This document shows positions 3,696 through 63,026 of a stretch of 64,000 nucleotides of DNA, in pieces (the stretch's first letter is position 1; the number at the start of each line of letters is the position of its first letter). The notes under the pieces were generated by a model. It was not told where the DNA came from, did no database searches, and saw nothing but the letters and a program-made list of their open reading frames with translations. This stretch comes from Amphiscolops sp. MND2022. Its lineage: Eukaryota. The DNA lies in assembly GCA_964187785.1 (NCBI GenBank), contig OZ076417.1, positions 16,740,001-16,804,000 on the forward strand, in the 5' to 3' direction. The position numbers and the translations under genes are program-made.

Positions 3696-5514
3696 TGTTG
3701 GAGGTCCCTACGGCGTAAGACGACGTCGCAAAGGAACCACCGTTTTGCTTGTTTCGTTCTTCGTTCTGACTTATGATCTTTTCCATAAGAGACTTCAGTA
3801 TCGACATTTCGTCTTGTAGACGATTAAATCTTTCTTCGTTCGCCGTTTGAGTATGATCTTCGTTCGTCGGCGAATTCCTACCCGATTGGTTTATCTCTTC
3901 TGAGAAATTATTTGAGGATTCCATGTTAAGATTGGGAATATTATTCGCGTCGATCGAGGAAGTTTCCGGTAAAGAATTAGATAATACCTTTCCGTTTCTA
4001 AGTATTTTAGCGGATTCGATACTCATGAGCAATGAAAAGCAGGAATGTCGGATAAGAGTTGAATTATGAGAGTATGTAGTAAGACTAAGGCAATTATATA
4101 CGTATTGTAGAACTAACAGAGAATGTAAGCGTATCGTACTGGTATAGCAAATCGTGTGACTTAGTTGGTAGCCTTCTCACCAGATCGATGGTAAGACGCA
4201 ATTCTTACCATCGCTTCCTTCTCATTGGATGTCGGGTGAGTGCTAATTAGCACTTGGTCACGTGACCGGTTGTTTTGCATGCCGCAAGAGGGCTACCAAT
4301 TAGCAATTGCGCAATAACACAATTCAAATCAATTATCATGAATTTATAATGAACTAATGTCAGCAAGCGCTCTCTGAGTCATGATAGTTACTGCAATTGC
4401 GCTAAGTCAGTGTCTAAAATGGATAGAATACAAATTCGGAGGCATGGGGATGTATAAATGACAACTTGCTAGCACTGAATCGATAAAAGGCAAATTATGA
4501 CAAGTTTTGTCGTTTATTCATCGTTGAACTGATTAAAATGCAAACTATAACAAGTTTTGTCGTTTTCCCATCGCTTTCACTAGTTGACCACGTTAGTATG
4601 GTAATGGGTGAAATGTTGATGAATGAGTTCCGCTCTAGTGTTGAATTGATCAACTAGATGTGAAAACGATGAACTGAGTTATGGGGAGAGCACTGAATAT
4701 AATTCTGGAGTAGTTACATCACTTTATCATCGTTAAAAGGTGATTTTTAGCTATAGATGGGAAAGCGATGAAAGATTTCCATCGCTTTTCCATCGTTCGC
4801 CGTTTAGCACTGTAGTCGGGTCTTGGAAGCGTGATTTGAGCTGTAGATGAGAAAACGATGAAAGATTTCCATCGCTTTTCCATCGTTCGTTGGTTTAGCA
4901 CTGTTCTTCAGGACTTCAGAAGCGTAAGTGATGCATAAACGATGAAACATGTGGTCACAAGTATTCAATCAAGTAGCTTCATCGCTTTTACATCGTCTTT
5001 TCAATTCTCTCGTTTTTTGGTGTTCTGGTCATGTTTGAGCGATGTAATATGGATGAAACTAGTTAGATTGAATCAAATCACGAGTTCTAGCACTAATAGC
5101 ATCGTTATTTCATCGTTTCATGTATTTCAAAGAGAGGAGGCTTGTCACGCTAGTTTCCTCTGAGGCAGGAGTTCCCTAGCGAGTATCCATCTTGTCTATT
5201 CGTTATGGCGGTCCAGTTTGACCGAGAAACTACTTTCTTTTCTCGTGACAAGCCATTAAATATACAATAGCATCAATTGCTTATTAGCACGATCATGAAT
5301 TGCGGGCAAACGGAACTAGAATGCTCAGTATTAGATAAGTAAATAGCTCAAAATCTCAATGGGGGAATAGGGGGTTAGGTACAAGTAACGTAGGGTTGCT
5401 CACAACCATAAATCTTATTATATGACATCATATTGCCCATATCTAAGTACATAAGACATATTATTTACATTACAGATATTTAGTAGATTATATTTCCATC
5501 ATGCTGGCATGACA
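3696..5514 (-). repeat. Element 1 3' LTR (1819 bp)
   Basis: Matches 18186-19913 apart from about 9 small differences counted by eye and one extra ~90-bp unit; minus strand reads TGTCATG...CCTCCAACA. Confidence 0.96.
4519..5115. repeat. Cluster of CGATG/CATCG dimers and full palindromic units in the Element 1 LTR (equivalent region at about 19010-19515)
   Basis: Full units at 4755-4795 and 4845-4885; half-unit dimers near 4666, 4717, 4929, 4980, 5040 and 5100. Confidence 0.85.
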
Positions 5515-6471
5515 CTCCCGGGGGGGATTTGGAAGAGGAGTGCAGGGGCCAAATGTGCAGAGGATGGTTGTCGCAGCGTGGGCTTTGACATGTTCCTTCG
5601 TTGGTCTCAGGGGAGTGGCCTTCGTTGGTTCTCAATGGTTTTGAGCCTTCGTTGGTTCTGTCTCATTTGTGTCTTCTCTGAGAAGGAGACGTGTTTCATC
5701 GGATTGATATCTGGTGTGTGCTCGGTTATTTCGGTTAAGTTTGGACGCGTCAGTTCTAGTTCTTGGCCCGTCGATTGTCCGCAGATCGGCTTGAAAATGG
5801 CGGTCAGGAGTGATTTGTAGAATCTCGCTGGAATTTGTTCACAATCGGAATTGGTAGCGTCGTTTCGTCTGATAGATTGGAGAGAGTGAATAACACGTGA
5901 CCGGAGAGCGGTGAACTTGTGATGGAGAGTTGAATAAGCGTGAACGAAGTATTATGTAATAACTTGCGTGGTGGAGAGGCAGTAATTCCAACTGTGTGCG
6001 AGACGGAAACGTTCAGTTATCTTGAGGAGTCATTAAGTAAATAAAGTAGCCACAATTTCGAGTGCGTCTTTCCGCTGAGTGTGTAAATCATTCAAATTGC
6101 TAACGACGCTGGCAGCTGCATCTAACACTTTGAGAAAATTTCCACAGTATTTTGAGTAAATTGGTCCATTCAAACTGGTGTTTCCTCTGCTAGTTGGTGG
6201 AAGGAGGCAGTGAAATTGAATCAATATTGAAGAAATTTGAGCAGATTTTTTGTCTTTTGAGAGTGTATTGTTAGATGTAGTCGAAACGTTTTGCTTCTTT
6301 GATATTTTAAGGTTGAAATCGACCTCATATCACGGTTGATCAGGCCATTATATTTGTCGATTACTGTTGATTTCGTTTCTTCAAATTGAGTTCACATTTA
6401 CTATCCTTCTTTCAATCGTGTCGTGTTTTTTTTTCAGATTGCAATCGTTGTTTCCATTTGTCATCGTCAAG

Positions 6472-9400
6472 ATGTATGACGACCAACATATGAATCCTTT
6501 CCGTGATTCTAACCCAATTCGTTAGTTATTCGTTCTTCATCTTCACGTCTGTGGTGGATTGGGGCAACTCTAATGTGAATAAATTTCGTTTAGCTGTTGC
6601 AGATCAAGCGACGCCTTCTGGGTCTGGGAGCCCTAGGGTGTATACTCAACTGACAGGGGTGGGTCCGATCCCGCCTGTACAGACCCCCATTGTACACCAT
6701 CCACTTGTGCCCGTGTATCCACAGAGTGAGTCTTCTACCGTCAGTCTATCGTTTCCATCGTTTATTCATCGTCAGACAATCCCAATGTTATTTCAGTGTA
6801 CACTCCCTGGCAGCAGTCTCTTGGGTCGCTGTCATTGGGCTGGTACGACGGGTATTTGCGGAGCGCAGTTCGTGAAGAGCTGGCCAATTCCAGTAAGTGA
6901 AAGCTATGTTTCTGTTTTCGTGATTAATAGGTCTTGTTATGACATTAAGACCGGGTCGCATATGTTTCATCTGTTTCCCATCGTGACTGTGGTAGCGATG
7001 TCAAAACGATGAATACTGTTGCTTTTAGTCCCGAGAGAGGTGAGAGGCGTGGAGAGGCCTGTCATTCGTCAGGTGGTGTCCGTTGCGTGTGGTCCCGAGC
7101 AATCAGGGGCTCCTCATGATGTGGCGACTCAAACAAGACGGGCATTTAGTATTGTGTCGTCTTCTAGTAGTGAAGGAGAATTAGGAGCAGCCGCTACTGA
7201 AGATCCAATGGAGCCTGGAGGCTCAAGTGTGGAAGCCATAGTGGGTGTTGCCGAACTGTCAGAAATTTCTGATGGCAATGTCGAGTCGGGTGTGCCTGTC
7301 GTCGGCAGTCCTCTCGTGGGCAGTGCGGTAGCTCCCAGTGGTCGTGTTGTTCGGTCAGGTAAACTAGACAGCTTCAACAATCATGTGATTTACTGTAATT
7401 CCGAGTTGTTATTATTACCTTATTTACTTAGGTTGTTATTTGGGGTTTTTATTACGTTTTCTAGTTTGGTTGTTTGCTTTGGTCAATTTTTCCTTCTTTT
7501 TGTTTTTGAGTTTTCAGTGGCGTTTTCGTGCCATTTTTGGTACGTTGGTTGACCATTTTTGTAAAGCTTCAAGCTTTTGTCGTTTTGACTTTTCAGATGT
7601 GGTTTTTAGTGAAAACATCGTTTTTTCATCGTTTGACATAAGAAAATGTTGTTTGAGTTTGTCCCCTGTTAGAGAGGGGTTTCATCGTTTTTTCATCGGT
7701 TTTTGTTTTAGTCGCAAAGAACAGCATTCGATCCAGTTGGTTTCAGCATCCGTACGCAGGGATGTTTCTGGGGTTTGCGCGGACTCACAGGTCGTCTGAT
7801 GCGTACGTGCGATGTCTCTTGTGTCGGTGTGATTTGAAAGTCGGGAGCCGTGGCATATCGACATTCTTAGAGCATTGTCGCGGCGTCATTCATCACAGAC
7901 TGGATTGTTTAGTTCGTTCGCGGCGTGGTCTCTTTCTACGTCGCCGGACCGGTGCAGTGATGAGTGCTGCAGAGGCGGCTGACATGGGAGAAGAGTTGCG
8001 TGGTTTGGCCGTGCCAGAAGTGGAGCTATGTCCTGCTTTCTCAGTTCGTGATGTGTTCTCAGTTGAAGCGCGGGGTGGCAGCATTTGGGATTCCGGTGTG
8101 CGTGAGGTGCCTGACAATGCCAGAAGCCTGAGGTTTTTCTTGTGCTTCGTGATCGACGCATTATACCGTGGTGGAGATGTCACTGCTCTTACCCATCTGT
8201 GGGACTCAGTTGCAATGACCGACGTTGGTTATCAGAGCCTATTGGGCGGTGGTTCTCGAAAAGAAGATGTTATTGTAAGTGCATGTTACATGTTTTTCAT
8301 GTGTTACATTTAGATATGTGTTTTCGTGATGACTTGTACCGTTGCCTACTATCGTTCGTGATGTTGTTCGATTTTGTGTGTACTTCAGGCAGTACTGCTC
8401 TTCGGGATGTGGCCTTACGTGGTGAGGGCAATTTCAGCTGTCCTGAGTGCTGGAAACTACGTTGGTTTGTACGTGGAGATCGATCGGGACATGGTGCGCT
8501 GTTCTGTGACAGTGGCTGAGTCAGGTGTCCTCAGCGGGTACGTTCTGTTCGAAGTGGAGTCGACGGGTCAATGGGAACGGCGCGTAGCAGACTGGATAAC
8601 GAACTATTGGTGTTGCATGTTGGAAGAAGTCAGGCCAGTCGGAATCAGTTGTACTGTAATGCCCTCTTTGCGCGGATTGACGGACGGCGAGACTGGCTCT
8701 GGGGGTGTGCTACTGGATCCAGTCCGATTAGAGTCAGTCATGCGCGTGGTGACTTCAGCTGGGGTGTCTGTGCTCCCTGGTCAAGACGTTCATGTTGTGG
8801 CGAATTTTTTGCTGATAAAGTTGCGTGAATGTCTGAGTGATCCAATCTTGACAGCGTGCCCAGCTCTCGTTCGAGTGAGTGTGAATTATTATCTTTTCAC
8901 TGAACGTTGCCCTTATGTTGTTTTATATATTTTTTTGGGGGGGGGGACGTAGAGAGTGTGAGCAATTATTGTTCTCGTTCGTTGTTATAATTGGTCGTTT
9001 TAGTGTATAATCTCTGGTGAAATTTCAAATTGGGAGATTGTGACCGTGTTGGAGGAGCTACGTGTGTCATGGGAGAGTCTAGTTGAGCTGGTGAGGCGGT
9101 TGGATCGATTGAGTGGCAGTGTGGACCCGTTGCGGATGGAGCTACTAGTGTTGCAAGAGTCTGGGCTGTCTCTCAAGTTCCATGCAGTGGGAATGGTGTA
9201 TAGATTTGGTTAATATATTATTTGTTTGTGTAACTTTAGTTATTGTAACTATTAATCTGGTCGCTAGTTGACTGGTATAGGTTTCATCGGTAGTACATCG
9301 TCGATTTGCTCTTTTAATTTTATTTGTGAATAAGTTTCGTCGGTTAATCATCGTTTTTTCTAAATGTGTTCTTTATTGTTTGTATGGCTGTTTTAGTGCT

Positions 9401-10304
9401 ACAAGGGATGCAACAGACCTTCAGTGAGCGGCTCTATCGTGGTATTTAAGGTATTGTTGAAATCTTGGGCGTAGTCCGCTGTCTCTGTCTGATGGTAGCT
9501 GAAGAAGAAACAGTTCCGCAGTCATATGAGTTGCATCGTTGGGGCAGTTTTGAGCTGTCTAATTTGCGGTTGAGTGGAGGAAAACAAGCCCTAATGTTTC
9601 AAACATTTGCCAGCCATCGTTCTAGTTACACGTGTGGGGGGGAATACCAGCATGCTGTTACTATTGTTGAAGAATTTGTTATAACAGTTGCCATGAACTT
9701 GTTGAAGTTATCTCCATTGTCTGATCATGTCAACCGAGCCTTGGCCTGTTGGAGTCCCGATATGTTGTTGCATGGTCACGTTGATGAGATGGAAGAGCTA
9801 ATGGGCTGCTTCTTGGAAATGTTGGAGCGGACTGGGCGTGTGAATTATGCTGCTAGAACGGCCATGCTCGAGTCTTTCGTGCGATTCATTAGACGGTTTA
9901 GTGATCTGTGGCAATATGGGTCTGCTGACGTTGCTTTGTGTCGACTGATGAAATTGTGTTTCTGTGTGAGCGGAAGTGTCAATCAGAGCCACAGTTTCGT
10001 GAACATGAGTTTACCCTCATTGTCGTCGGAGGACCTCTGTAGTGTGTTAAGGACAATTGCGAGCTGGTGTCAGAATCAGGGTGTGAGAGGTCTACAGAGC
10101 ATTCCAGACGCACTGGTATCAGACAGTAGTGATGCTATTGGGCGGGTTTTAGAGTTAGCAGCAGTCAACATGGAAGATTTATGGGATGAGGTCGGCAGGT
10201 CAGCGACTGACGAATACAAAGAGTCCGTTTTCGAGCGAATGGGTCTTACTGCTAGTGGAGAGCGGGCGGCCAGTCCTGAGATTGGAAGTGAACATCGTTT
10301 TTGA
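6472..10304 (+). CDS. Antisense multi-exon gene in Element 1: C2H2 zinc finger plus catalytically degenerate hAT-transposase-like protein (~900 aa). Proposed exons (6472-6502), 6603-6725, 6797-6892, 7029-7358, 7712-8274, 8389-8874, 9004-9208, 9397 or 9451-10304
   Basis: All junctions are GT..AG and phase-compatible (e.g. ATT|GTAAGT at 8275, TTCAG|GCA at 8388, CGA|GTGAGT at 8875, TTTTAG|TGT at 9003). Zinc finger CLLCRCDLKVGSRGISTFLEHCRGVIH. The spliced product aligns by eye along its length with the antisense ORFs of Element 2. The first exon and the last acceptor are uncertain: acceptor 9396 leaves an in-frame TAA at 9447, acceptor 9450 avoids it. Confidence 0.75.
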
Positions 10305-10776
10305 ACCAGTTTGTTTTTATGGCGTTTGTGATTGTTAGTATTTCGTACGAACTGAACTATATACAATGTAATCGTTTTAGTTAGATTGTTTGTAGAGATT
10401 TTGATATATGCTGATCATTTGTTCTTGACCGAAAGGTTTATTGTTTACAAGACTAAAAATTCGGCGAGTAATTAATTATTACGTCGGTGATTTATTTTTT
10501 TTGTAGTGGCTTTCGTTGTGTCTAGGTGACTTGACGGAGGCGGTTGAAAAGTTCTAACTTTTACGTTAGTGTTAGTTGGGGCTTTGATTCCTGTATGTAG
10601 GCGTACTTTTTCCAGTAATTCCGTGAGAGTTTCTTTTTGGGAGGATTCATGATTACATATAAGGTTTTCGTTAAATAGAATAATTTTCAAGGAGTGCACT
10701 GTTGAAATGCATGTTTCTTTTGTAATCTGTATACTTTTGTTTACATGTAATGAGTGTTTTTCATGTACTTTTGACT

Positions 10777-11790
10777 AGATGTGTAAGCGATGGAAAGTTC
10801 CCATCGTAATCACATCGTTACAAAGTCTTGCGTGAGAGTAGTGTTGTTATTGGCGGCGATGATTGAATCGGTGAAGAAAATTCATCGGTTCGTCATCGTT
10901 GATTAAGTGTTGTGGGTGTTTTTGTTTGACTTCTACGAGCGATGAGCAATCGATGGTAAATTTCCATCGTTTGTCCATCGTGTTACATTTTCAGATATAT
11001 TGTGGCGCTTGGATTAAACGATGGAGAGTTTCCATCGTTTTGGCATCGTCGTGGTGAGCTTGTTTGTCTAGCCTGATTGTGGATGCAGCGATGTGAGAAC
11101 GATGAAACATTTTCATCGTTTCTCTATCGTTAGTTATTGACTCGTTCATTTTGGGTTGGAAATTCTAGAAGCGATGAGTAACCGATGAACTATTATCATC
11201 GGTATTCCATCGTCGTCTAATAACTAGGTAATTTTGTGTTGGGGAGTTGTGGCGATGAACTAACGATGAAAGATTTCCATCGTTTTTTCATCGGCGTGTG
11301 TCTGTTGGTGCTTTAGCCTTTGAATAGCAGTTGTATCTTTTCGGTGTCCTCAATCAGGGCGGTAATGAACCGAATGTCAACCCAAGGTAAGGCCTGTGGT
11401 CTGTTGACGATTGAGGATTATTCTCTTTTGACTGAAGGTAGTGTAGAGAGAAAGTGGATGTAGAAGTGATGGAGAAAATCCATCTCTTTTACATCTTGAT
11501 GTGATAATTTTTGTGCAAGGGTGATGGTTTGTCTAATGGCCATCGAGTAGTCGGTAATCACTGATTGAGTTTTTCATCGACTGAGTGTCGTTAAGCAGAT
11601 GTTAACACGAGGCGAAGCCTACGAATTATTAACAGGTAGGTCGTGGAAACTGTATGATTTTGTGGTATGGTCGAAGAGAAGCTGGGGATGAGAAAACGAT
11701 GGGTGTGAACCATCATTAAACTCACTTGAATTTTATGTGTTTTGTAAGCGATGTGGTACCGATGGAAATGTTTCATCGGTTTTACATCGT
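10777..11790. repeat. Array of ~41-bp imperfect palindromes CGATG-N6-CGATG-N9-CATCG-N6-CATCG
   Basis: Units at about 10777, 10856, 10939, 11018 (partial), 11088, 11171, 11252 and 11748, plus degenerate units near 11465 and 11686; the spacing is invariant while spacer sequence varies. Confidence 0.9.
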
Positions 11791-11882
11791 TCCTGGTAAT
11801 TTCACTGTTTCCTCACGATGGAGTGTTATTTAACCATCGTTTTGATGTGAGATTGTCGTTTACATGTTTTTCCTCTCGTTTT

Positions 11883-14800
11883 CTATTGCAGAGTGGTGTT
11901 TGTTTTGCGTAGAGCGTTTCGAGCAGTCGAGATTTCATGAATTAGAAAGTCTGAGTAGCGTTTTGGCTGAGGGTTTTCGCGTAGACTATATTTGCTTTTA
12001 TTTGTCCTTGTTGCTATCAGATTTGGCGTTTCGTCATCGTTCACCTGTTGGGGCGTCTCGGAGTTGGTAGGTATTTTTAATGGTTCTGGCGGTTTCGATG
12101 TGTCTTCAATGGTATCTTGTGGAATTATCTCATCGTTTTTATTGAAGTGCACCTGTGGGACATTTTGAGGTGGGTCGTCTATGACTATTTCTGGCTGTGG
12201 TGTTAACGACAGTCGGTTCGGTAGTCGATTTAGCGGTCTGTCGCGTCTGATTGCTTGTCTGTAATCTGGAGATCTTAGTCGAATGACTCTGTCAACTGGT
12301 GTTTCTTCATCAGTTTCTGGCTCATCCGGTTCCGAGGTTGTTTCGGGTTGTCTCGGTACGTGCGAGTCGAAAATATCAGAATCTTCGGTGCGATCCGTGT
12401 CAGCGTATATTGGTTGGTTACCAATGTCTACGTCTTTTACAGGGAACTCTGGTTTGAAAATTTTCAATCGTATGCGATGAACGCATTACGTCTTGAACGT
12501 TCCTACTTTCCGAATGATGTAGTTACTGTCGGATAGCACTTTCATCACTTTGAACGAACCCTTCCAGTGGAAGGTCTTGAACTCTTCTTTACAACCCTGA
12601 GAGTCGTATTTGGGGTCAAGTAGGAAAACAAAGTCGTTTACCTTGAGAGGTTGGGCTTTGGCTTTTCTGTCATAGTAAGCTTTGTACTTGTGGTACGCAG
12701 CTACTATGTTGTCGGTGTTGTCTCGGTAAATGTCGTTCATGCGGTCTAAGATTTCGTTGACGTCTCCAAATTTGGTGTCGACTCTTCTTTCAGGGTTAGA
12801 GTATTTTAGGTCCAAAGCGTTGTATGGAGTGCGTCCGTGAAAGATCTCAGTTGGTGAGCATTTCAGAGAAGCGTGGTACGTGGTGTTGTGGGCCATGATT
12901 GCTATGTCGACATAGCGGTCCCATTGTGGTCTGTCTACATTTACATGTATTTTTAAAATCTTTTTAAGTTTTGCATGACTTCTCTCGACCATGCCTATAG
13001 TTTGTGCATGTTTTATCGTTGCATGGGAGATTTCAATGCCGGCGGTTTTTGTGAGTTGTTCGAACAGTTCAGCGGTGAAAACGGATCCTTTATCTGTGAG
13101 GATGTGTGTTGGAACGTATGCGTGTTTGGCGAATACCGACAGAAGGGCGTTGATAACAGACTTTGTGTCAGGTTTACGCAGTGGTACGGCAAACATATAA
13201 CGCGAAAATACGTCGATTGCGGTCAAAATGTGGGTATAGCCGTTCGAAGCGGGCAGTGGTCCAACTATATCTATCTCCAGAAGGTCAGTAGGGCCGTTAC
13301 ACGGATCGTATATCTTCTGCAACGGCGGGCGGAGGTTTGATTCATTCGTAGATTTTGATCGCATGCAATTTTCACAACTTTCTAGAATTTTTTGTGTTTT
13401 TTCGGCTAAACTGGGAGAGTAGTAGCGTTTTCGTAGTTCATGTAGCATCTTTTTAGAACCAGGGTGTCCCTGCACGGGGTTGTTGTGGAAAAACCTGATT
13501 ATTTCTAACATCACTTGTTCAGGTACAACAATTTGTTTATGGGACTCAAGGCCTGTATGGTCATAAAAGATACGGTACAGGACTCCGTTTACATTTTCAA
13601 GGCGCTTTCGATTTTTGTGAAGTTTTTGGAAAAAAGTTGACATCAAGTTTACAGAGTGATTCAAGGTAGTTTCTCCAGACAAAATTTTTAACATCAGTTG
13701 TATGTCGCTATTTGTTTTTTGAGCTAAAATTAGATCGACTCCCCCGGAGGGGCTAACCTGCTTCGTTACTGGGTTTAGTAACGATGTTTTAATGATGAAT
13801 TTTGTGTACACTGGTGATTGATCATCAGTCATGAGTCGGTAGATCTGAGGGCAGCTTGTGTGGTCGTTCTCAGAGGCCTGTGGTGCTGATTTTACACAAT
13901 TAATCGTTTTGTCATCGTCATTAATTGTCGTCGTCTTCACGTCAACTGTTTTCATCGGTTTGCCATCGTCGAGCATCACTGTCTCAGGGTTGGTCACTTT
14001 CATCGTTTTTACATCGTGTGACTTCCTCTGTCTCAGTGGTTCGCTTGGAGGGAAGTAGTCTGGTTCATCGTCCTCCTGCTTTGGCGTCTTCGAGGCAATG
14101 TCAATCTCTATGTAATGGACTGGAATGGAATCAGTTAATTTTAAATGAACACGTTCTTCAGGTCTAATTTCCAATCTGGATAGGTAATCCGCCGCGGGAT
14201 TCTCGATACCTAGTACATGTGCTAAAATAAAATTAAACTGGAGTGTCTGGTCGCAAAAATTCCAAAGTGACGGTGGTATGTGTTTGGCCTGAAAGAAACG
14301 GGTGAGTGCTTTATTATCTGTCATTACAATTATAGGCTTCTTCGAACCCCACAGAATGTGACCGAACTCATCGAATGCGAAATGCATAGCCAAAAACTCT
14401 TTGGCGTACATTGTTAATGACATCTGTCCACCCTGAAATTTCTTAGAGCCAAAGGCAACTGGCGCGTACTTCTTTAAGCTACCCGATTGTGTTTCAGAGT
14501 AGTCTTCTATCAGAAGGACATAACCTGCTGCATGCTCACTCGCGTCACACATGATTACTAGTTGTTTGTCCGGGAGGGGAAGTTTCAATGACAGTTTAGT
14601 AGCCTTGAGTAAACTTTCGTTGATGTCAAAAATTACATCTTTGTGGCGTTGTTCTAATTTAAAAATGGTGTCTTTTTGATTAACTCGTGAAGAACGGCTG
14701 TTTTGTCGGCCAACCGGGGAATATAGGACCTGTAAAAGTTGACAAATCCTAAGTACCGTTGGAGAGCTTTAACTGAATTGGGTGGTTTGAGCTTTTTCAA

Positions 14801-17035
14801 ATAATCTGTTATTCGTTTTTCGATGGGTGCTATTCCGGTGCTAGAAATAGATTTGCCAAGGTATTCAATTTGCTGTTGGCCAAATTCACATTTATTCATG
14901 CTGAGTTTCAATCCAGCTTTGGTCAACTGCTGAAAAACAAGTTCTAAATTTTCAATCAATTCATCAGGCGTGTTTGCTGCTATGCCTATGTCGTCAACAT
15001 ACTGGGCACAGCGGTCCGCTTTGACCAAGGGGTCCAAGTACTCACGGACTACGCTCGTGAAGGCTGAAAGAGAACGGTTAAGACCTTGAGCTAGCCTAAG
15101 AAAGGCAAAGGTACGTGATCCAAAATTAAAAGACAAAAGTTGTATCGACTGCTCATCGGCCACTGGAATGCAATGGTAGGCCTGGGAACAATCTAGTTTA
15201 CAGAAGTATTTTTTTTCGGCCATGTGCTGAGCAGCGTCTGCAACAGTTGTAACTGGGTGGTTATGTTCTCCGTAATCGTTCTTGATCAGGTGGTTGATTC
15301 TCCGCAAGTCAACTAAAATCCTTAGTTTACCATTCGGTTTACGTTGTGCAAATATCGGTGAAGAGTATTTGCTGTAAGGAAGAGTAGTTATAATCCCGTA
15401 CTCCTGCATTAACGCTAATTCTACAGGCAAGTCATCTTTTAGGTTAGTGGGAGTAGGGAGACTTTGAGAGTAAACTGGTTCTTCATGCTGGGGAGTTAGT
15501 TTTACCTTAAAATCAGTATTCATGCCGATGTCTAAACGATGTCTAGCAAAAATGGAGTTGTACTTTACCAGCAACTCCTCTACCTGAGCTTGTTGAGACG
15601 GAGAGAGAAGCGATTCGTCCCACTTGAAGTTCTGCAGGAACTTGACTCGTTCGTCATGGGAGCGGGCGGGATCGAGCTTCTCCAGTTCTCTGAGAGCCAC
15701 AATCTCATCGAAAATGCGTCTTTCGATCTGGTTGAGTTTGTCTGGCTCACTACACGTCTCTGGCGTCGGGTACCATTTTGTAGACTTCATCTCAGGATTC
15801 ACAAAAAGTTGATTGATCACGGCTGCTGCATCCTCGGGGTGGTCTGTGATCAACTTCAAGTGCTCTACTGGCATCGGCGTTATGTTGGCTGCTTGATGGG
15901 GCGTTGGTATTCTGAAATTGGCCAGGTTCGTGTTGGCCTCGAGTGTGTACACGTGCTCATTGGGGTTGGTGACCTGAATCATCGTTTTTCCATCGTCTAG
16001 GTCAACCACTGCTGGAGACACCAAGAGGCACGTCTTGCGCATGAATGCTGGAGTCCCTTCGACCGTGCCAGTTGTACGTGATATGTCCGCGTCACTGTGG
16101 ACCTCAATCAGTACTTGATGGCGGGGAGGGATGATTGTTCTGCAGCTGGAATACAATTCAATTAATCCAGTTTTGAACTTCTTATTCGTCTGTTGTCTCA
16201 CTTGCATTGACATCATGTGATTAGGGAAATGGACTAGGTGATTTTTAATGTCCAGGTTGACAGAATATTTTTCGAAAAACGACATGCCAATCAGTATCGT
16301 TCCCATCGTGGGGAGGACTAAAAAGACTTCTTCAAAGACTTTTCCTGCTATGAAAAAGCGCAAAAGAACTAGTTTTCGAATCGGGACTAGATTGCCGTTG
16401 GCTATCTGAACTTTAAAGTTAGGGGGTGGTAGTTCGTCTAGCACTGCTTCAGGATGAGCAGCGGTGATTTTGCGTAATTCTGCTTCTGAGAGTGCGCTTT
16501 GCACTGCTCCGGTGTCTAAAAGACCTTGGTTCTCGTAATTGTTAAACTGGAGGGGGACAAACAACATCTTATCCTTTTTATTTAAATGTAAAGTGGGACT
16601 AAGCACGTGAAATTGGTTATTGGTTGCATGTTTTTTAGTTTTTGGAATACTATTCTTGTCGTTTGCATGTGTTTTACTACTAATTCGTTTTGTCGATTTG
16701 TCATCGGTTGAGAGTCGGTCTGTTGATTGTAGATGTGGGGACATCTCTTTGGCATCGTGCGCAGGCCTCAATGCGTCGTTATGCCTGTTCATCGTTTGCT
16801 CATCGTGTGAATTTTCCAATGGAGTTAACCTGTTGTTGGTTTTCATCGACTTCATCGATTGTTCATCGGGTTGTCTGTGTCTTCGCAGATAGACTTCGTC
16901 TGCTTTGCGGGAATCACCAGAGGGCTGCCAAGACCTCTGATGACGATTGTGTTGAGTTTGTCGAGTAGAGTGAGTTGTTGAGTCAGAGTATGGGTGCGCA
17001 CGTTGGTTGTTCGCGGAGTGAAATTGTGGCTTTAC
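11883..17035 (-). pseudogene. pol: Pol (protease, RT, RNase H, integrase) in the -1 frame relative to gag; one 1-bp frameshift near 14675 and one in-frame TAA at 12486-12488
   Basis: Protease LLDTGAVQS; RT QYVDDIG; RNase H MCDASEH; integrase H-H-CxxC (HNNPVQGH...CENC), LEIDIVGP, TDKG, MVERSH. ORFs 14654-16855, 12486-14588 and 11883-12467 join once one A is restored to a homopolymer and TAA is read as CAA (KT*CVHRIRL). Confidence 0.95.
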
Positions 17036-18522
17036 TGAAAATCCTGTTCTTCTGAGGACAGGTCTGCGTTGTCATCTTGGATTTCCAGTTGGTTCATTGG
17101 GCGTTGTTGTTGTTTTAATTCACGTCGTCTTTCTTTGTTTTCCTGGTCGTCAGTTCGTTTGTATGGGAGTTGTCCATATGGAGTGCTGGTTTGTCTGGGA
17201 ATTCGTTTTCGGCAATCTCTAGCGGAATGTCCGGTGTATCCGCAAATCTGACAAACGAGTTTTGGATTGTATTTCGGTTTGTCGTCTTCTTGTCGTTTGG
17301 CTGGTTGTATGGCGTCTGGTTTGGTTGTGCCATTAGCCTCATCTCGTTGTCTTCCTCGGCATTCTTGTTTTCTATGTCCCTGTTTCCCGCAGTAGAAACA
17401 TTTGCCTTCGAATCGTTTGGTCTCGGTTTTGGGTTGGGATTGGTCAGATCGGGTGAATTCTTTTTTGGTGTTGTTATCGGACATCTGGTTGAACGGCTGG
17501 TATGTCGAGGTTGATTGTTGTATAACGTTTTGGTACTGGTATTTTCGGAGGAGGTATGTTTTTATCTCTTCAGGGCTGCTGTCTTCTTTATTAGCCATTG
17601 TCAGCTCTTGTTGGATGTCTACGGGTAATTTCCCGAAGAGGAACATCTTGATACATTTATCAGCTTCGTCGCCATAGGCTTGTTTGGCGATTTTCTTAAG
17701 GTCTTTTAGAAAGTCTCCGAATGATTGAGTGGTTGGGTCGTATTTGGCTTCGTTCCATTTGTATCTGGCAACTTCCCTCATGTCTTCTTTTGCAAATTCT
17801 TTTCGGAATAGTTGGAGGACATCTTGCAGTGTCGTTGTTGAGCTTATAGTGATAGTTTGCCAAAAATCGATGGCCTCGTCTCGAAGTAAGCTCTGGAAGA
17901 AGTGGATTTTATCTTCTTCCGTGATTTTATTGGCGATGGGGCGGAAATGATTGAGTAGTAAGTGTTCGAACTCGTTGTATTTGTCTTTTGATCCGCGGAA
18001 ATTTGGCACGTGAGTTTGAAGAAGTTTTGTGTTGGTTTTCTGCAATTTTCGAGGCAGGTCCTGGATGGCGTTGAGCAGTGCAGATTCCGTAGTGTTGCTG
18101 GGTGCGTCTTCGTAGTCGTCTTCGTCTTCTTCGTCTTGGAAATGATGTCGTTGATTTCTGTGAGTCCTGTTGACTCCTGTCACCATGTTGGAGGTCCCTA
18201 CGGCGTAAGACGACGTCGCAAAGGAACCACCGTTTTGCTTGTTTCGTTCTTCGTTCTGACTTATGATCTTTTCCATAAGAGACTTCAGTATCGACATTTC
18301 GTCTTGTAGACGATTAAATCTTTCTTCGTTCGCCGTTTGAGTATGATCTTCGTTCGTCGGCGAATTCCTACCCGATTGGTTTATCTCTTCTGAGAAATTA
18401 TTTGAGGATTCCATGTTAAGATTGGGATTATTATTCGCGTCGATCGAGGAAGTTTCCGGTAAAGAATTAGATAATACCTTTCCATTTCTAAGTATTTTAG
18501 CGGATTCGATACTCATGAGCAA
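17032..18522 (-). CDS. gag: Gag, intact ORF of 496 aa (first ATG at 18516); begins inside the 5' LTR
   Basis: Capsid-like region (FEHLLLNH...IHFFQSLLRDEAIDFW) and two CCHC knuckles, CFYCGKQGHRKQEC and CQICGYTGHSARDC. Confidence 0.93.
   Translation of the reverse strand: MLMSIESAKILRNGKVLSNSLPETSSIDANNNPNLNMESSNNFSEEINQSGRNSPTNEDHTQTANEERFNRLQDEMSILKSLMEKIISQNEERNKQNGGSFATSSYAVGTSNMVTGVNRTHRNQRHHFQDEEDEDDYEDAPSNTTESALLNAIQDLPRKLQKTNTKLLQTHVPNFRGSKDKYNEFEHLLLNHFRPIANKITEEDKIHFFQSLLRDEAIDFWQTITISSTTTLQDVLQLFRKEFAKEDMREVARYKWNEAKYDPTTQSFGDFLKDLKKIAKQAYGDEADKCIKMFLFGKLPVDIQQELTMANKEDSSPEEIKTYLLRKYQYQNVIQQSTSTYQPFNQMSDNNTKKEFTRSDQSQPKTETKRFEGKCFYCGKQGHRKQECRGRQRDEANGTTKPDAIQPAKRQEDDKPKYNPKLVCQICGYTGHSARDCRKRIPRQTSTPYGQLPYKRTDDQENKERRRELKQQQRPMNQLEIQDDNADLSSEEQDFQ
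18173..18185 (-). promoter_or_regulatory. Primer binding site TGGTGACAGGAGT (probably tRNA-Leu type)
   Basis: Starts with TGG directly after the LTR terminal CA; identical 13-mer at 22082 and 51264. One mismatch to the complement of the 3' end of a typical tRNA-Leu (TGGTGTCAGGAGT); tRNA identity is inference. Confidence 0.85.
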
Positions 18523-19913
18523 TGAAAAGCAGGAATGTCGGATAAGAGTTGAATTATGAGAGTATGTAGTAAGACTAAGGCAATTATATACGTATTGTAG
18601 AACTAACAGAGAAAGTAAGCGTATCGTACTGGTATAGCAAATCGTGTGACTTAGTTGGTAGCCTTCTCACCAGATCGATGGTAAGACGCAATTCTTACCA
18701 TCGCTTCCTTCTCATTGGATGTCGGGTGAGTGCTAATTAGCACTTGGTCACGTGACCGGTTGTTTTGCATGCCGCAAGAGGGCTACCAATTAGCAATTGC
18801 GCAATAACACAATTCAAATCAATTATCATGAATTTATAATGAACTAATGTCAGCAAGCGCTCTCTGAGTCATGATAGTTACTGCAATTGCGCTAAGTCAG
18901 TGTCTAAAATGGATAGAATACAAATTCGGAGGCATGGGGTTGTATAAATGACAATTTGCTAGCACTGAATCGATAAAAGGCAAATTATGACAAGTTTTGT
19001 CGTTTATTCATCGTGGAACTGATTAAAATGCAAACTATAACAAGTTTTGTCGTTTTCCCATCGCTTTCACTAGTTGACCACGTTAGTATGGTAGTGGGTG
19101 AAATGTTGATGAATGAGTTCCGCTCTAGTGTTGAATTGATCAACTAGATGTGAAAACGATGAACTGAGTTATGGGGAGAGCACTGAATATAATTCTGGAG
19201 TAGTTACATCACTTTATCATCGTTAAAAGGTGATTTTTAGCTATAGATGGGAAAGCGATGAAAGATTTCCATCGCTTTTCCATCGTTCGTTGGTTTAGCA
19301 CTGTTCTTCAGGACTTAGAAGCGTAAGTGATGCATAAACGATGAAACATGTGGTCACAAGTATTCAATCAAGTAGCTTCATCGCTTTTACATCGTCTTTT
19401 CAATTCTCTCGTTTTTTGGTGTTCTGGTCATGTTTGAGCGATGTAATATGGATGAAACTAGTTAGATTGAATCAAATCACGAGTTCTAGCACTAATAGCA
19501 TCGTTATTTCATCGTTTCATGTATTTCAAAGAGAGGAGGCTTGTCACGCTAGTTTCCTCTGAGGCAGGAGTTCCCTAGCGAGTATCCATCTTGTCTATTC
19601 GTTATGGCGGTCCAGTTTGACCGAGAAACTACTTTCTTTTCTCGTGACAAGCCATTAAATTTACAATAGCATCAATTGCTTATTAGCACGATCATGAATT
19701 GCGGGCAAACGGAACTAGAATGCTCAGTATTAGATAAGTAAATAGCTCAAAATCTCAATGGGGGAATAGGGGGTTAGGTACAAGTAACGTAGGGTTGCTC
19801 ACAACCATAAATCTTATTATATGACATCATATTGCCCATATCTAAGTACATAAGACATATTATTTACATTACAGATATTTAGTAGATTATATTTCCATCA
19901 TGCTGGCATGACA
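18186..19913 (-). repeat. Element 1 5' LTR (1728 bp)
   Basis: Direct repeat of 3696-5514; followed immediately by the PBS on the minus strand and bounded by the ATAGT TSD. Confidence 0.96.
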
Positions 19914-47950: not shown

Positions 47951-49082
47951 GGGAACTTTTTCAGAAGCTCCTTAAACTAAATTCAGCTAATAGTAACCGA
48001 AAAAACCACCCTAGAGTGAGTTCAATTGGCTCTCAGGAGATTGAAGATGGTTACGACATCAGATTTTTAAAAAAGGGAATTGGTGTACTGATCATTGTAG
48101 ATAAAACGTTTTAAGTAAAGCAGTATGTGTTGATCTTAAAATACTAAAACGAAATTGGGTTACTTTCGTTTGGTATGAGTTCCAACATGAGTGTTATTGC
48201 GAAACAAGCTTTAGAAAGGAAATTAGAGTAATTTCAACTTTCTCAAATTTTTGTGAGGTCATTTAAACAATTAAGGTTGAAAGGTTTCTCATCGACAGGT
48301 CCCATTAGAACATAGGCGAACTGAAACCGATTGTAAAGCTTGCTTCGATTCTTAGCTTGCTTTCCATCTAACCGTTTCTTTTTGAAGATAATTCCTCTCT
48401 CAGTTCGAGACATGAACAAAAGTGATAGTCGTTGCTGTTTAAACCTAGGTTACACTGGCTGGAAGTTTGAGTTTGACAAAGAACCCTTTGTGCGTTGTAA
48501 GTTTTATCATTTTCTTCTATTGTTAGAAAGGATGAAATTGTCGCACTAATCTTTGTATCTACCAGTTGAAAAACTCGGTGTTGTTAGTTTTTTCTTTCAA
48601 TTTCATCAGATGACAAAAGAACTACGCATTCAAAAAGCGGTTAGTGCTTTCAAGGAAACTACAATTTTACAATCGCTCCGTAACATCTCCGTGTGTATTA
48701 ACATTTAGCTATATTTGACCAGCGACGTGACGTAGGAGCTACGTCAGGCATTTCTAGAAATCATTCCATGTCAATAAGTGGTGACGTCACAAAATCGTTC
48801 TTATCAGCCTGAGCACGTGAATATACCGGCCGAGAAGCAAAATTATTGGTCCACTGAATGTGTAAACTAGAATACTAGTTTTGCTGGGGGACGCGGCCAT
48901 TACGTTGTGAATATTTGCTCAGATTACTTCTCTGTAACTTTGGTAAATTTTGAAGCTGAAAACAATCTGTTGTACTATTATTTGTGTGTTTGTTTCTTTT
49001 TTCGATCGTTCGAACTCCGTGGGGATTGCGCAGTTAGATTTTATATTGGGTATTTTTTTCAGGGTGGAACAGAGCTAATTTC

Positions 49083-51263
49083 TGTCACAGCCCCAGCTAA
49101 GCTGTGAAACCTGTCACACAATAAGCGCGGTCTTCGAAGAAGGAAATTGGAATTAGACCGAAACAGAAGAAAAGGCAAGTGAAATAACCAATATACAACT
49201 AACTTATTACTATTATAAATTATTACTTTAAATCAAATTGGAGCTAAAACTATTATTATATATGTATAAATACTAATAATTACATAATTTCATACAAGAA
49301 TATATACGTACACACACAGTGTACCAACAAGTACGGAGCTATTAGTGCAGTTAATAATAATAATAATACAGTGCTATATTATTAATAGTAATAGAATCAC
49401 ACCGCTCAACAAACGGTTTGAAAGATTAATGGCGGAACCGTGGCCTGGCGACCGGCCTCAGATTTACGCAATGAAGCGGCGGCCTGGCAAGCGGCCTGAA
49501 ACTGGAATGAGCTATTTAACACTATGCAGCAGTGAACGCGCTATTAAATGATTACAAGTAAAAGTGTTGATGCAAACAAAGACAACTAATGTGATGATTT
49601 ACATGTAATTCCCTGAGTAATGTACAAATTGTGTTGATTTTAACTGGAAGCAATGTACCGCGGCCCAGGAAGTGGCCTGAAATGTAAATTTATAAAATCC
49701 ACTGTAGAAATGGAAATTGTTAATACGGTTGATTATTTTTACCCGATAACTAAACGCTCACAATGAAAAATGACCGAATAATGGTCAAGAGTGTTGTGCA
49801 GTACTATTCACCTATGTAAACCAAGATTAATTATTAAATGTAATAAACTGTAGCCCAGGACACGGCCTGAAATCAGGTTTGTCCAAATCCATCCTAAAAG
49901 TGAAAATATCGGTACTCCCGATTACCCACCGTCCCATCAGTGAAACCACGTCCCAAATACGCAGTATAATAAGAATTAGTGGTTGATTACATGCAGTTTG
50001 TGACCATTTATCCATGTATCAATACTTAACTTTGAATGCATTAAACCACGGCCTAGACACCGGCCTGGGAATTAAATCGTTGACTTGAGTTATTTAATCA
50101 CTATTAATGATTTGTACTACCCTTTTAAAATTAATCCTCATTTAAACTGGATTGAGAAATGACCTGGATCGCATCCCCAAGTTGATTTAAATCACAAAAT
50201 TGTTAGTCGTTGCTATTTTTTGATAAATCAGTTATTTTGCTTTAATCGTCTCGGACCCCAACCTGAGACCGAGCTTTGTCCTTTCATACCTAATCAGTGT
50301 TTTCATGCCCACACGAGTGGTTTTACGAGCCTAAGTGCAGTTTCGTTGAAATAACTATTATCTGGAGTAATATTTAAATCAGTTAAATCGTTTTGGGAAT
50401 TTTCTAATTTCCATAATTGTCGTTGCTTTAATTTCATCTTTCCCGCTTTTTAAAAGCGAAATGTTGAATCATCGCTCATTTTATTGCTGATTTCAGCTTC
50501 GGCGTCCTGAAAAGGCGGGAATTGGAGGTGAAGGAAAGCGGAGTCGCAACTCAGGCAGGAAGTGGACGCGTGCTTTCCTCGGAAAGCATGAACAAACTGA
50601 GAGCCTGAGTTCGACAAAGCGGAACTGAACTTCCGGTTTCTCCGCCTTGAAAGGACGCCGGGCTGAATAAAGCGTGAAAGTGGTGCGGATTTTTCTCCGC
50701 TTCACGTGGGTGAAAGGTATATATACTTGGAAAAATTAAATAAGTGCAGTTGAAAAATAATAATTTGATAGATTTTGAAAATTCAATAACCGCTTCCTGT
50801 AAAGCAACTTTGTTTTCTCTTGTTACAAAACTCAATTGAAGATTAAAAATCTCAACTTTTCTTCATTCTTTGTCGAATAGTTTGAATCTGTGAACCTAAA
50901 ACCCAAAAATGCCCGAAAGATCCTCTAAAAGGAAAGCTAGAAGTGATTCAGTATCCAGTTCGCTAGGTGAACCTGAGGCAGCTAGCCAAAGGACTGAAAA
51001 TGCACCCAGTATTTCCGATCGCGATTTTTCCGAAATCTCTGAGAAAATCGAAAAATCAGTTGGTAGAAGAATAAAAGACGCCGAGACTGGGCAAAGGGAA
51101 ATTCTGAAGATGATCGAGAATTTATCTTCAAAAATAGATTCATTGTCCGGCCATCCGCCTAGATTCGAAAATCCCATAGTAGACCTCTACGAACCTGAAA
51201 ATCAAGCCTCGTCATCAAGGCCAACTACGTTGAACGAGTTGCACCCATCCCAGGGTCAACACA
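49083..51263 (+). repeat. Element 2 5' LTR (2181 bp)
   Basis: TGTCACAG...CAACACA followed directly by the PBS; the first 1048 bp match 62953-64000. Confidence 0.92.
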
Positions 51264-51276: not shown

Positions 51277-52472
51277 GTTCTCCCAAACAGAAGCACCGCC
51301 CCGATCATCGAGCCTACCGCCTCCTAACCAGAAATACCCGGATCACATAGTGGACAAGCTGCTAGAATCACTCAGGAATGTCACCCAACAAAACATAGGG
51401 CTCCCCAGATTGCCCAAGGCATTGTCAACAACCATGCCCACAATCAAAGGAAAGAACGACAAGTTTGAGCACTTTGAAGACCTCTTCATGACCAGCCTCA
51501 AAGTGTATCCCAACATATCAGAAGAGAAGCAGATCCACTATTTCCACTCCCTACTCAGAGATGACGCTCTGCAGACCTACCGCAACATGACCGACACAAA
51601 CCGTGCCAGCCTAGACGACATCATAGCGACCTTATGACCTTATGACATCATAGACGACGATATGTCCGCCCCCAATCTATCGCAACAGCCCGCTGCAAAT
51701 GGGAACAACTCCATTTTGACCCATCTCAACAAACCTTCCAAGACTTCTTGGAGCAGTCTCAAAAGCTGGCTCAAGAAGCATACGGTGACGATGCCCCCAA
51801 GTTCGTCGAGACGTCCTTCTTTGCCAAAATGCCAACCCAAATCAAACGAGTCCTGAACCAAGCAAGGCTAGAAACTGAATCTTACGAATTGATGGTCCAA
51901 CACTTAGAGAGAGAGATGGAGTTAAACGGACTGTTAGCCCCCAACGAGACCAACATAACAGGAGTGCATCAAATCGACGCAATAGACACACAGCAAGCTA
52001 CGAATCCTCCCAAACCGTCAGGACCATGCTACGGATGTGGGCACTCCGGCCATGTTATCAAAAACTGCAGGAAAGTAGCCCGCGAAGCCCGCAATAGAGG
52101 TAACAGGGTGCCCACCAAAATTGTCGATCCATGCGAAACTTGTGGCAAGAAAAGCCACACAACCCAAGAATGCTACTCAGGTGCCAACTGGGCAAATCGA
52201 CCACAGTGGTGGAAAACCCCCAAAGCCACGTCCCCAAATAACATCCCGATACCTCCACAATCACAAGGTCAGTATGCCAAAAACACTTTCCAAGCGACCC
52301 AACCACCGTGCCAGAACCAAACAACCAGCCAAATGGGCTACCTACCCCCTCTCCCAATGTCAACCCAAACACAAACCCAGTACCACAATCAAGCAACTAG
52401 CCAAATGGGCTACATGCCGCCGGCGCAAGCGACAACCCAACCCCAAAACCAACCCCAGGAACCGAATCAGTC

Positions 52473-52479
52473 AAAAAAC
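52473..52479 (+). promoter_or_regulatory. -1 ribosomal frameshift heptamer A AAA AAC just before the gag stop
   Basis: Canonical X XXY YYZ in the gag frame; the -1 frame is open and continuous with ORF 52575. Confidence 0.75.
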
Positions 52480-62429: not shown

Positions 62430-63026
62430 ATGTACAATTCCCACTCCAACGATCAAACAAATGAAGACGTTTTTCTTCTCGACCGAGATCAACCAGCGCA
62501 GCCAAGACAAAGGCCCGGTACACCGCCGCCTAATTACAATCTCATCAACACAGCACAGCATACTATTACCTACGAAATAATCAAGACGGAAGATATACAT
62601 GTAGTCCTTGTTCACAAACAACCGCTTTTAAATGCAATTAACGTTGAAAACGAACAAGGAGTGATACGAAGGTTCACTACAGATAATCCGGTTATCCCAG
62701 ATGACGAATTCGTGAGCCCAATCCGGTGGTTCAATCTTGCGGACCGATACAGCCCTAACTCTACCGTCAGCAGTCCCTTGAGCCCATACAGCAGCTCAGA
62801 AGGGTACTGGTCAGGAAGCGACTGGGACTCGAATTCTTCGTGGAGATCCTACGACTCAATGCGCGATGATCTACCCAATTTGTTTGACACGCCAATCCGG
62901 TCGATATCCCAATTCCTTCTTCCAGATGAGACAGCGCATCGAAGCCGAGGACTGTCACAGCCCCAGCTAAGCTGTGAAACCTGTCACACAATAAGCGCGG
63001 TCTTCGAAGAAGGAAATTGGAATTAG
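62430..63026 (+). CDS. Sense-strand 198-aa ORF just upstream of, and running 74 nt into, the Element 2 3' LTR
   Basis: ATG-initiated open frame, Ser/Pro/Asp-rich; no recognised domain. Confidence 0.45.
   Translation: MYNSHSNDQTNEDVFLLDRDQPAQPRQRPGTPPPNYNLINTAQHTITYEIIKTEDIHVVLVHKQPLLNAINVENEQGVIRRFTTDNPVIPDDEFVSPIRWFNLADRYSPNSTVSSPLSPYSSSEGYWSGSDWDSNSSWRSYDSMRDDLPNLFDTPIRSISQFLLPDETAHRSRGLSQPQLSCETCHTISAVFEEGNWN

Follow-up and report, generated by a model that had tools for sequence, protein, structure and literature searches.

Within a 64,000-nucleotide stretch of the genome of Amphiscolops sp. MND2022 (the window; contig OZ076417.1 of assembly GCA_964187785.1, forward-strand positions 16,740,001 to 16,804,000) lie two full-length Ty3/Gypsy long terminal repeat (LTR) retrotransposons, referred to here as Element 1 and Element 2. 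Pfam searches find protease, reverse transcriptase, RNase H and integrase in Gypsy order, on the minus strand in Element 1 and on the plus strand in Element 2, and the LTRs together with this order of pol domains identify both as Ty3/Gypsy (Metaviridae) elements. Their pol proteins are 40% identical over 609 amino acids, and the two elements therefore represent distinct families. In both, blocks of open reading frame run antisense to gag-pol between pol and the 3' LTR (Table 1), and an earlier note on this DNA, made from its letters alone, had placed at this very position an antisense gene resembling a catalytically dead hAT transposase. We present evidence that the elements belong to a Gypsy lineage with an antisense third gene for a non-catalytic protein of hAT fold, kept as an accessory, a reading to which we assign a probability of about 0.72.

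The antisense proteins of the two elements match end to end and in the same order, at ~25% identity. The motifs that had been aligned by eye (HP..x.F, CxxC..D....SRG...H.....H, GG.....L..LW, the W..V...L...W block and DMLLxG) occur in each translation, and the similarity of the proteins is significant, with BLASTP, profile searches, hhalign and linking database fragments in agreement. BLASTP aligns the finger-bearing N-terminal parts at E 1e-4, with weak matches further on in the same order; a profile built from 15 relatives of the Element 2 protein (A1) matches the Element 1 blocks in the right order with a best E of 2e-6, and a broader profile of 102 sequences (A2) reaches E 5.7e-13 for the last Element 1 block and about 1e-3 for the first. 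The last block, or C-terminal part, of Element 1 is also recovered by hhalign (E 6.5e-5). Two database fragments connect the families, P0134, which matches the Element 2 profile at 7e-34 and Element 1 at 5e-11, and P0187 (1e-21 and 2e-8, respectively). The middle, RNase H-like block shows weak similarity (E 0.006-0.1), yet lies in register. A match that hhalign gave between this middle block of Element 1 and the Element 2 profile was spurious and was rejected.

Table 1. Features of Element 1 and Element 2 in the window
Feature	Positions	Strand	Details
Element 1 3' LTR (element's own orientation)	3696-5514	-	direct repeat with 18186-19913, 98.6-98.8% identical
Element 1 putative upstream exons and introns	6472-7711	+	islands conserved between subfamilies; boundaries approximate
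Element 1 antisense blocks	7712-10304	+	reading frames
Element 1 exon with HP motif and CxxC...H.....H finger	7712-8274	+	acceptor TTTTAG ends at 7711; donor GTAAGT starts at 8275
Element 1 intron 1	8275-8388	+	GTAAGT..CTTCAG; GT..AG kept in 28 of 30 copies
Element 1 exon with RNase H-like core (three strands, helix, strand, helix)	8389-8874	+	in-phase junction; dN/dS 0.13-0.23
Element 1 intron 2	8875-9003	+	GTGAGT..TTTTAG
Element 1 exon with W..V...L...W block	9004-9208	+	matches SGD..V..VL.EL..W stretch of Element 2 family; dN/dS 0.04-0.11
Element 1 intron 3	9209-9396	+	GTTAAT..TTTTAG; donor choice least certain of the three
Element 1 last exon (helical insertion-domain part, DMLLHG, C-terminus), broken here	9397-10304	+	dN/dS 0.12-0.13; profile E 5.7e-13 to Element 2 family
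Element 1 gag-pol	11883-18522	-	RT_RNaseH, Integrase_H2C2 and rve domains
Element 1 5' LTR	18186-19913	-	direct repeat with 3696-5514, 98.6-98.8% identical
Element 2 5' LTR	49082-50127	+	97.5% identical to 62952-64000
Element 2 gag-pol	51748-57921	+	protease, RVT_1, RT_RNaseH, Integrase_H2C2 and rve domains
Element 2 antisense gene, intron-free main body, damaged here	58378-60947	-	reading frames; frameshift and in-frame TAG
Element 2 3' LTR	62952-64000	+	cut by window end; 97.5% identical to 49082-50127

In Element 1 the antisense gene consists of blocks separated by stop-containing stretches, and removal of three putative introns restores both the frame and a continuous homology to the Element 2 protein, whose corresponding stretch is intron-free. 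The four exons delimited in this way total 2151 nucleotides (nt), a multiple of 3. The splice dinucleotides GT..AG are kept in 27-28 of 30 sampled Element 1 copies, including subfamilies only ~81% identical, and intron 1 has diverged by 0.26-0.33 as against a non-synonymous divergence (dN) of 0.05-0.10 in exons. Most Element 1 copies have two extra bases inside intron 1, which puts the flanking exons in different frames, so that read-through of these exons cannot be the rule. For intron 3, 9209 and 9396 form the sole donor and acceptor pair that preserves the frame. We infer from these patterns that the Element 1 gene has at least three spliceosomal GT..AG introns. We note that the window copy is without 2 nt of intron 1 (at 8318) and that by chance, in this copy only, the flanking exons share a frame.

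The first of the four exons appears to be preceded by others. Residues upstream of the ATG at 7762 are invariant between Element 1 subfamilies, and the part of this exon that begins at the ATG has a ratio of non-synonymous to synonymous divergence (dN/dS) of 0.10-0.19. Upstream of 7712, substitutions between subfamilies are concentrated at third bases at ~6640-6760, 6820-6940 and 7060-7240, and because of this pattern further exons probably lie there, as the earlier note implied by starting the gene at 6472. The window copy of the gene is damaged: it has an in-frame TAA at 9447-9449 (position 9449 is T in every contig sampled from other copies), and 36 nt that other copies possess are absent from its last exon near 9900-9905.

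The Element 2 gene has many relatives in the databases, all of them without Pfam domains and some of them, including P0011 and P0012, with uninterrupted frames of 746-766 amino acids. The window gene is 94-98% identical to database fragments and 73-80% identical to these intact relatives; a search of 1.8 billion cluster representatives yields 626 clusters at E < 1e-3, mostly fragments. The window copy is itself damaged, with a frameshift near 59688-59705 and an in-frame TAG at 59341-59343. On three contigs of another assembly (ERZ25074608; L031, L051 and L053) the gene is once more found next to a Gypsy pol, antisense and convergent to it, and on one of the three the neighbouring pol is an intact frame of 1911 amino acids. 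A canonical splice acceptor is found directly before a conserved EFEELS stretch, both in the window copy and in L031, which implies that the Element 2 gene would have at least one upstream intron and a further exon toward the 3' LTR. The predicted intron sets of the two families thus differ, Element 1 having at least three in the conserved body and Element 2 none there and at least one upstream.

We note in addition that L031, L051 and L053 represent three diverged sub-lineages of Element 2 type, with antisense proteins 44-75% identical, in a single assembly of about 100x coverage; many old element lineages therefore persist together in one host. The most conserved part of the Element 2 family is EDEVDALVGVPSNVPPTTLVG (residues 101-121 of P0011, corresponding to about 60370-60430 on the minus strand of the window), which contains several invariant columns and lies partly in a loop modelled at a predicted local distance difference test score (pLDDT) below 50. 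This segment may be a docking motif for a partner protein.

Copies of both genes are numerous, and the gene is under selection in both families. In this genome we scored at least 43 matches of Element 1 type and at least 46 of Element 2 type. Comparison of the window copy of Element 1 with five diverged copies gives dN/dS of 0.11-0.16 at synonymous divergence (dS) of 0.29-0.62; the ratio is low in all four exons, and the introns diverge by 0.15-0.35. All four exons are open and in frame in 10 of 30 sampled copies. Among relatives of Element 2 that share about 75% of residues, the proportion of non-synonymous differences (pN) is 0.15-0.24 against a saturated synonymous proportion (pS) of about 0.78, and dN/dS is about 0.1 or less. 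In neither family, then, is dN/dS near 1, and the gene is retained across family members, as had been claimed: it occurs in every sampled copy and in the related elements of ERZ25074608 beside intact pol. This pattern is one of strong purifying selection between element lineages, and it indicates that propagation of the elements depends on the protein.

The same figures bear on the possibility that the gene is a passive relic of a hAT DNA transposon nested in the ancestral retrotransposon, with no function for the element. Nested insertions are common, this genome holds many genuine hAT transposons, and both window copies are broken. A relic without function would, however, have decayed past recognition long before synonymous sites became saturated, and the gene instead has dN/dS of 0.11-0.16 (Element 1 subfamilies) and of about 0.1 or below (Element 2 family), is frequently open, and sits at the same position and in the same orientation in families whose pol proteins are only 40% identical. 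Because of the selection data we regard a passive nested relic as excluded for practical purposes, and favour a gene that is kept.

The antisense protein evolves several times faster than pol. Between Element 2 of the window and L031, pol (54631-57201) is 92% identical in protein and 81% in DNA with dN 0.04, and the antisense protein (58378-60947) is 73% identical, and 69% in DNA, with dN 0.16-0.29. The difference may reflect a much higher rate in the accessory gene or a history partly independent of pol; since both genes are close to synonymous saturation (pS 0.65 and 0.78), recombination and rate are not separable as its causes.

What kind of protein is kept is indicated by structure prediction. 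We modelled P0011, an intact relative of the Element 2 protein with 766 amino acids, with AlphaFold2 from the 102-sequence alignment and without templates, and obtained a mean pLDDT of 87.6 and a predicted template modelling score (pTM) of 0.76. From the N to the C terminus the model comprises a finger at residues 21-45 (two strands and a helix), helices, an RNase H-like core at 189-267 (three strands, helix, strand, helix), a long all-helical region, C-terminal helices and a disordered tail, and it therefore has the RNase H-like core with large all-helical insertion domain that is characteristic of hAT transposases. In a Foldseek search of the PDB the top 12 entries are all the Hermes hAT transposase, at probability 0.99-1.00, and the next entry has 0.21; VIA-align against the PDB aligns 382-402 residues with Hermes at Z 12.7-14.1, model residues 122-648 corresponding to Hermes 116-609, and its next entries are ISCth4 (Z 6.0) and the P element (Z 4.7). 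Against the Swiss-Prot part of the AlphaFold database (AFDB), 30 of 30 Foldseek matches are hAT-derived (E 2e-9 to 2e-4, covering about residues 9-700), among them ZNF862, EPM2AIP1, ZBED5, FAM200A/B/C, P52rIPK, Ac, RICESLEEPER, ZBED1/4/6 and others. In the ESM Atlas the shape search leads to a cluster with Dimer_Tnp_hAT and DUF4371 at TM-scores of 0.59/0.70 over 560 residues, TM-scores are ~0.6 over 560-571 residues, and the language-model neighbours belong to the same families. The model of this intact Element 2-type protein thus has no structural matches other than hAT transposases and host proteins derived from them, and these matches extend along almost the entire model, which bears out the hAT-like structure expected of it. 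The core exon of Element 1 (8389-8874), modelled with low confidence, shows the same order of secondary structure as the Element 2-type core. As modelled, the antisense protein shares the hAT fold; the link is structural only, yet specific and full-length.

A more sceptical view would hold that the hAT likeness is convergent or a modelling artefact, and that the gene encodes an unrelated zinc-finger protein with a generic RNase H-like domain. By no method is there sequence similarity to hAT proteins, and TM-scores normalised to the query are only 0.3-0.6. The model was nevertheless made without templates and is of high confidence; Hermes stands 8 Z units above every other fold, including the RNase H-like ISCth4 and P element; the match runs in order from the DNA-binding region through core and helical insertion to the C-terminal helices; and three structure libraries agree. 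We therefore consider convergence or artefact very unlikely, and take the hAT fold as the basis of what follows.

The finger and the catalytic site have had different fates. The finger has the spacing C-x2-C-x16-H-x5-H in both families, and its ligands are conserved in the 102-sequence alignment (C24 in 44 of 46 sequences, C27 in 42 of 46, H44 in 38 of 46 and H50 in 42 of 44), so that the earlier note was right that the finger is retained; it is modelled as two strands and a helix and has no Pfam zf-BED match. The aspartate, aspartate and glutamate (DDE) triad conserved in hAT transposases is another matter, as its first two positions are non-acidic: strand 1 of the core (189-195), where the first aspartate is expected, holds no conserved acid, and position 252 after strand 4, where the second is expected, is G, N or A. 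The CxxH and RW motifs of hAT transposases are likewise incomplete in the Element 2 family. Each keeps one half, the C of CxxH (C265 in 41 of 49 sequences, with V, M or R in place of H at 268) and the W of RW (W320 in 35 of 38, with A, P or V in place of R at 319); C253 is conserved as well. Element 1, when aligned, has non-acidic residues at the first two catalytic positions and is without the W of RW. D, D, CxxH, RW and E are all present in genuine hAT transposases of the same genome. Model topology and family conservation thus uphold the predicted loss of both aspartates, as well as of H from CxxH and R from RW, and support the conclusion that the antisense protein, as modelled, lacks at least two of three catalytic residues; the further claim that the glutamate is lost does not carry over, the third position not being placeable. 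With the first two aspartates lost, DDE chemistry is very unlikely.

It could still be argued that the protein is an active nuclease or transposase that works through non-canonical residues. The Element 2 family does conserve several acids close to the core (E214, E220, D263 and D/E618), and such residues might in principle supply an alternative site. None of them, however, occupies a canonical position on strand 1 or after strand 4, and in the alignment they are not shared with Element 1. We know of no hAT enzyme that works without the first two aspartates, and an active enzyme seems to us extremely unlikely; a disarmed, non-catalytic protein fits better. With regard to active enzymes elsewhere, this genome has at least 150 matches to the hAT dimerisation domain, several of them in open frames of 600-700 amino acids with canonical D, D, CxxH, RW and E (e.g. 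L044-L050), and genuine, possibly active hAT transposons thus seem to coexist in it with the dead version borne by the retrotransposons.

Several points weigh against the reading of the gene as a non-catalytic hAT-fold accessory. Nothing meaningful came from Pfam, whether the window frames, four full-length relatives or the 102 alignment members were scanned; a profile search of the PDB gave no match; and when six genuine hAT transposases from this genome were compared by hhalign, both locally and in forced-global mode, the probability was 0.1%, with a negligible match in the finger only. The core exon of Element 1 modelled alone has a pLDDT of 53, too poor for a fold search, and the hAT fold of Element 1 therefore rests on its homology to Element 2. 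The only sequencing runs that contain this stretch are four sets of DNA contigs, which read straight through the introns and show no GT..AG joint. To locate the catalytic positions we relied on the topology of the model and on aligned ranges rather than on a residue-level superposition. Finally, the third catalytic position (E) is unplaced, and 74% of Element 2 relatives retain an acid at residue 618 of the model; it corresponds to N in Element 1, by an alignment made by eye that no tool confirms.

Because no sequence method links the antisense family to hAT proteins, the motif matches to ZBED5-type sequences by which the gene was first recognised by eye are not confirmable as such, and of that identification it is the fold that stands. 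With respect to single domains, the hAT dimerisation domain PF05699 has no Pfam match in the 102 members, and the structural alignment reaches Hermes residue 609; a search of this genome for DUF4371 gave no match, and its controls were equally silent.

Taken together, these results suggest how such a gene may have arisen and persisted. Both elements would descend from a Ty3/Gypsy lineage with a third gene beside gag and pol, on the opposite strand between pol and the 3' LTR, encoding a protein of some 720-800 residues or more with an N-terminal BED-like C2H2 finger, the hAT body plan (DNA-binding region, RNase H-like core, large all-helical insertion domain and C-terminal helices) and a family-specific C-terminal extension. 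Since the genes of the two families share position, orientation and end-to-end homology in the same order, we propose that a Gypsy ancestor acquired a hAT-type gene once, long ago, and that the gene lost its catalytic function and was retained as the families diverged. Without the first two acids of the DDE triad, the protein could hardly cut or join DNA. Its spliceosomal introns would survive reverse transcription because the gene is antisense to the genomic RNA, and it would be expressed only from the integrated copy, presumably through transcription from a promoter of its own near the 3' LTR and splicing of the antisense transcript. By analogy with the BED finger, the hAT DNA-binding body and host ZBED-type regulators, the most likely function would be non-catalytic, sequence-specific DNA binding for regulation or targeting: the protein, probably oligomeric, might bind the element's own DNA or target chromatin and act as a transcriptional regulator or as an integration tether. 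The earlier note had proposed that an ancestral element captured a transposase and converted it into a non-catalytic DNA-binding accessory; selection, fold and homology support that account, and capture from a DNA transposon and DNA binding are extrapolated from them.

A different donor would lead to the same present role. The gene might have been taken from an already domesticated and inactive hAT-derived host gene, such as a ZBED- or FAM200-like transcription factor, which would explain why all family members seen are without the catalytic acids and why introns are present, as in host genes; the best structural neighbours in Swiss-Prot are indeed domesticated host proteins. This list of neighbours is biased, however, as the hAT proteins in Swiss-Prot are mostly domesticated, and the maize Ac transposase is nearly as good a match (E 1e-6). 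No host paralogue was found, in that the 54 close matches and the 626 profile matches all look like element copies or fragments, and the different intron sets suggest intron gain or loss inside the elements. We give a host-gene origin a low but real probability; the donor may have been an active DNA transposon or a host gene of this kind.

If a captured transposase was disarmed in this way, a more detailed picture can be drawn, which we offer tentatively and with some doubt that it holds as a whole. The disarmed transposase would be an essential third gene of an old and abundant Gypsy lineage; it would bind short motifs in the LTRs and in the spacer between pol and the gene (in Element 1 possibly TTCATCG), control transcription or steer integration, and its antisense introns would restrict expression to integrated copies. 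If true, the two great classes of transposon would be joined here in one functioning hybrid element.

The antisense protein resembles several known systems in part. Retrotransposons and DNA transposons are regarded as distinct classes, each with its own protein repertoire. hAT transposases such as Hermes and maize Ac, and the domesticated proteins ZBED5, FAM200A/B/C, EPM2AIP1, ZNF862 and P52rIPK, have the same order of folds as the antisense protein, and the domesticated derivatives, like it, are without a working DDE triad. The antisense family differs from all of these in having no detectable sequence similarity or Pfam hAT domain, and in about 70 additional C-terminal helical residues and a disordered basic tail. 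Unlike the hAT derivatives, which are single-copy host genes, it is multi-copy inside LTR retrotransposons, and unlike hAT transposons it moves within an LTR element, no flanking inverted repeats having been noticed at the gene, although none were searched for.

Antisense genes are known from other retroelements. In flowering plants, Gypsy elements of the Tat/Retand group (Grande, RIRE2, Retand) have antisense open reading frames (ORFs) for TRP28/PF04195 proteins (PMC11963269), and antisense additional ORFs of this group are also described in PMC7264820. There, as in Element 1 and Element 2, pol and the 3' LTR flank the antisense gene, which most copies carry and which extends across lineages, and DNA binding and a regulatory role have been proposed for its product. 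TRP28 is, however, of unknown fold, whereas the protein described here has a predicted hAT fold and a gene with putative spliceosomal introns; TRP28 (PF04195) has no Pfam match at E up to 1 in the antisense family, and the gag that accompanies this gene carries DUF1759, a hint at an animal host. In animals, LTR retrotransposons of bdelloid rotifers have an acquired and retained extra gene, ORF3 of env, DEDDy, GDSL, CC or TM type (PMC5408684). As we read that paper, these extra ORFs lie in sense downstream of pol; its text contains neither 'transposase' nor 'intron', and its sole use of 'antisense' refers to small RNAs. Among retroviruses, HBZ of HTLV-1 and APH-2 of HTLV-2 are antisense genes expressed from the provirus via the 3' LTR side, HBZ being spliced, and encode nuclear regulators (PMC11963269), which are small proteins of basic leucine zipper (bZIP) type unrelated to transposases. 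The role proposed for the antisense protein would be akin to that of these retroviral accessory proteins, and its chemistry to that of host ZBED-type domesticated transposases.

In a full-text literature search we found no transposase-derived or intron-containing antisense gene in Gypsy elements. In the papers covered, the closest cases are the antisense ORFs of plant Tat/Retand elements and the ORF3 genes of rotifer elements. Our results indicate that a retrotransposon lineage has retained a transposase-fold protein under selection until synonymous sites were saturated, in two families at ~25% identity, and provide a natural case of one mobile element domesticating the enzyme of another, in parallel with the ZBED-type regulators of hosts. 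The gene would also be a clean example of introns persisting in a retroelement by lying on the non-transcribed sense, and the differing intron sets of the sister families would be useful for studying intron gain and loss. Genome annotation would otherwise call thousands of such genes orphan host genes.

Lastly, the window is rich in one short sequence. At the thresholds of TRF there are no tandem repeats in Element 1 or Element 2. The 7-mer TTCATCG occurs 47 times in the window, as against 10.9 expected, and 47 is reached in 0 of 100 shuffles. Of these occurrences 37 lie within Element 1 (3696-19913) and only 5 in Element 2, and those of Element 1 cluster in the two LTRs, in the introns and in the spacer that separates the antisense gene from pol (especially at 4517-5115, 19007-19514 and 10881-11778). 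Judged by their distribution, the TTCATCG sites could be protein-binding sites.

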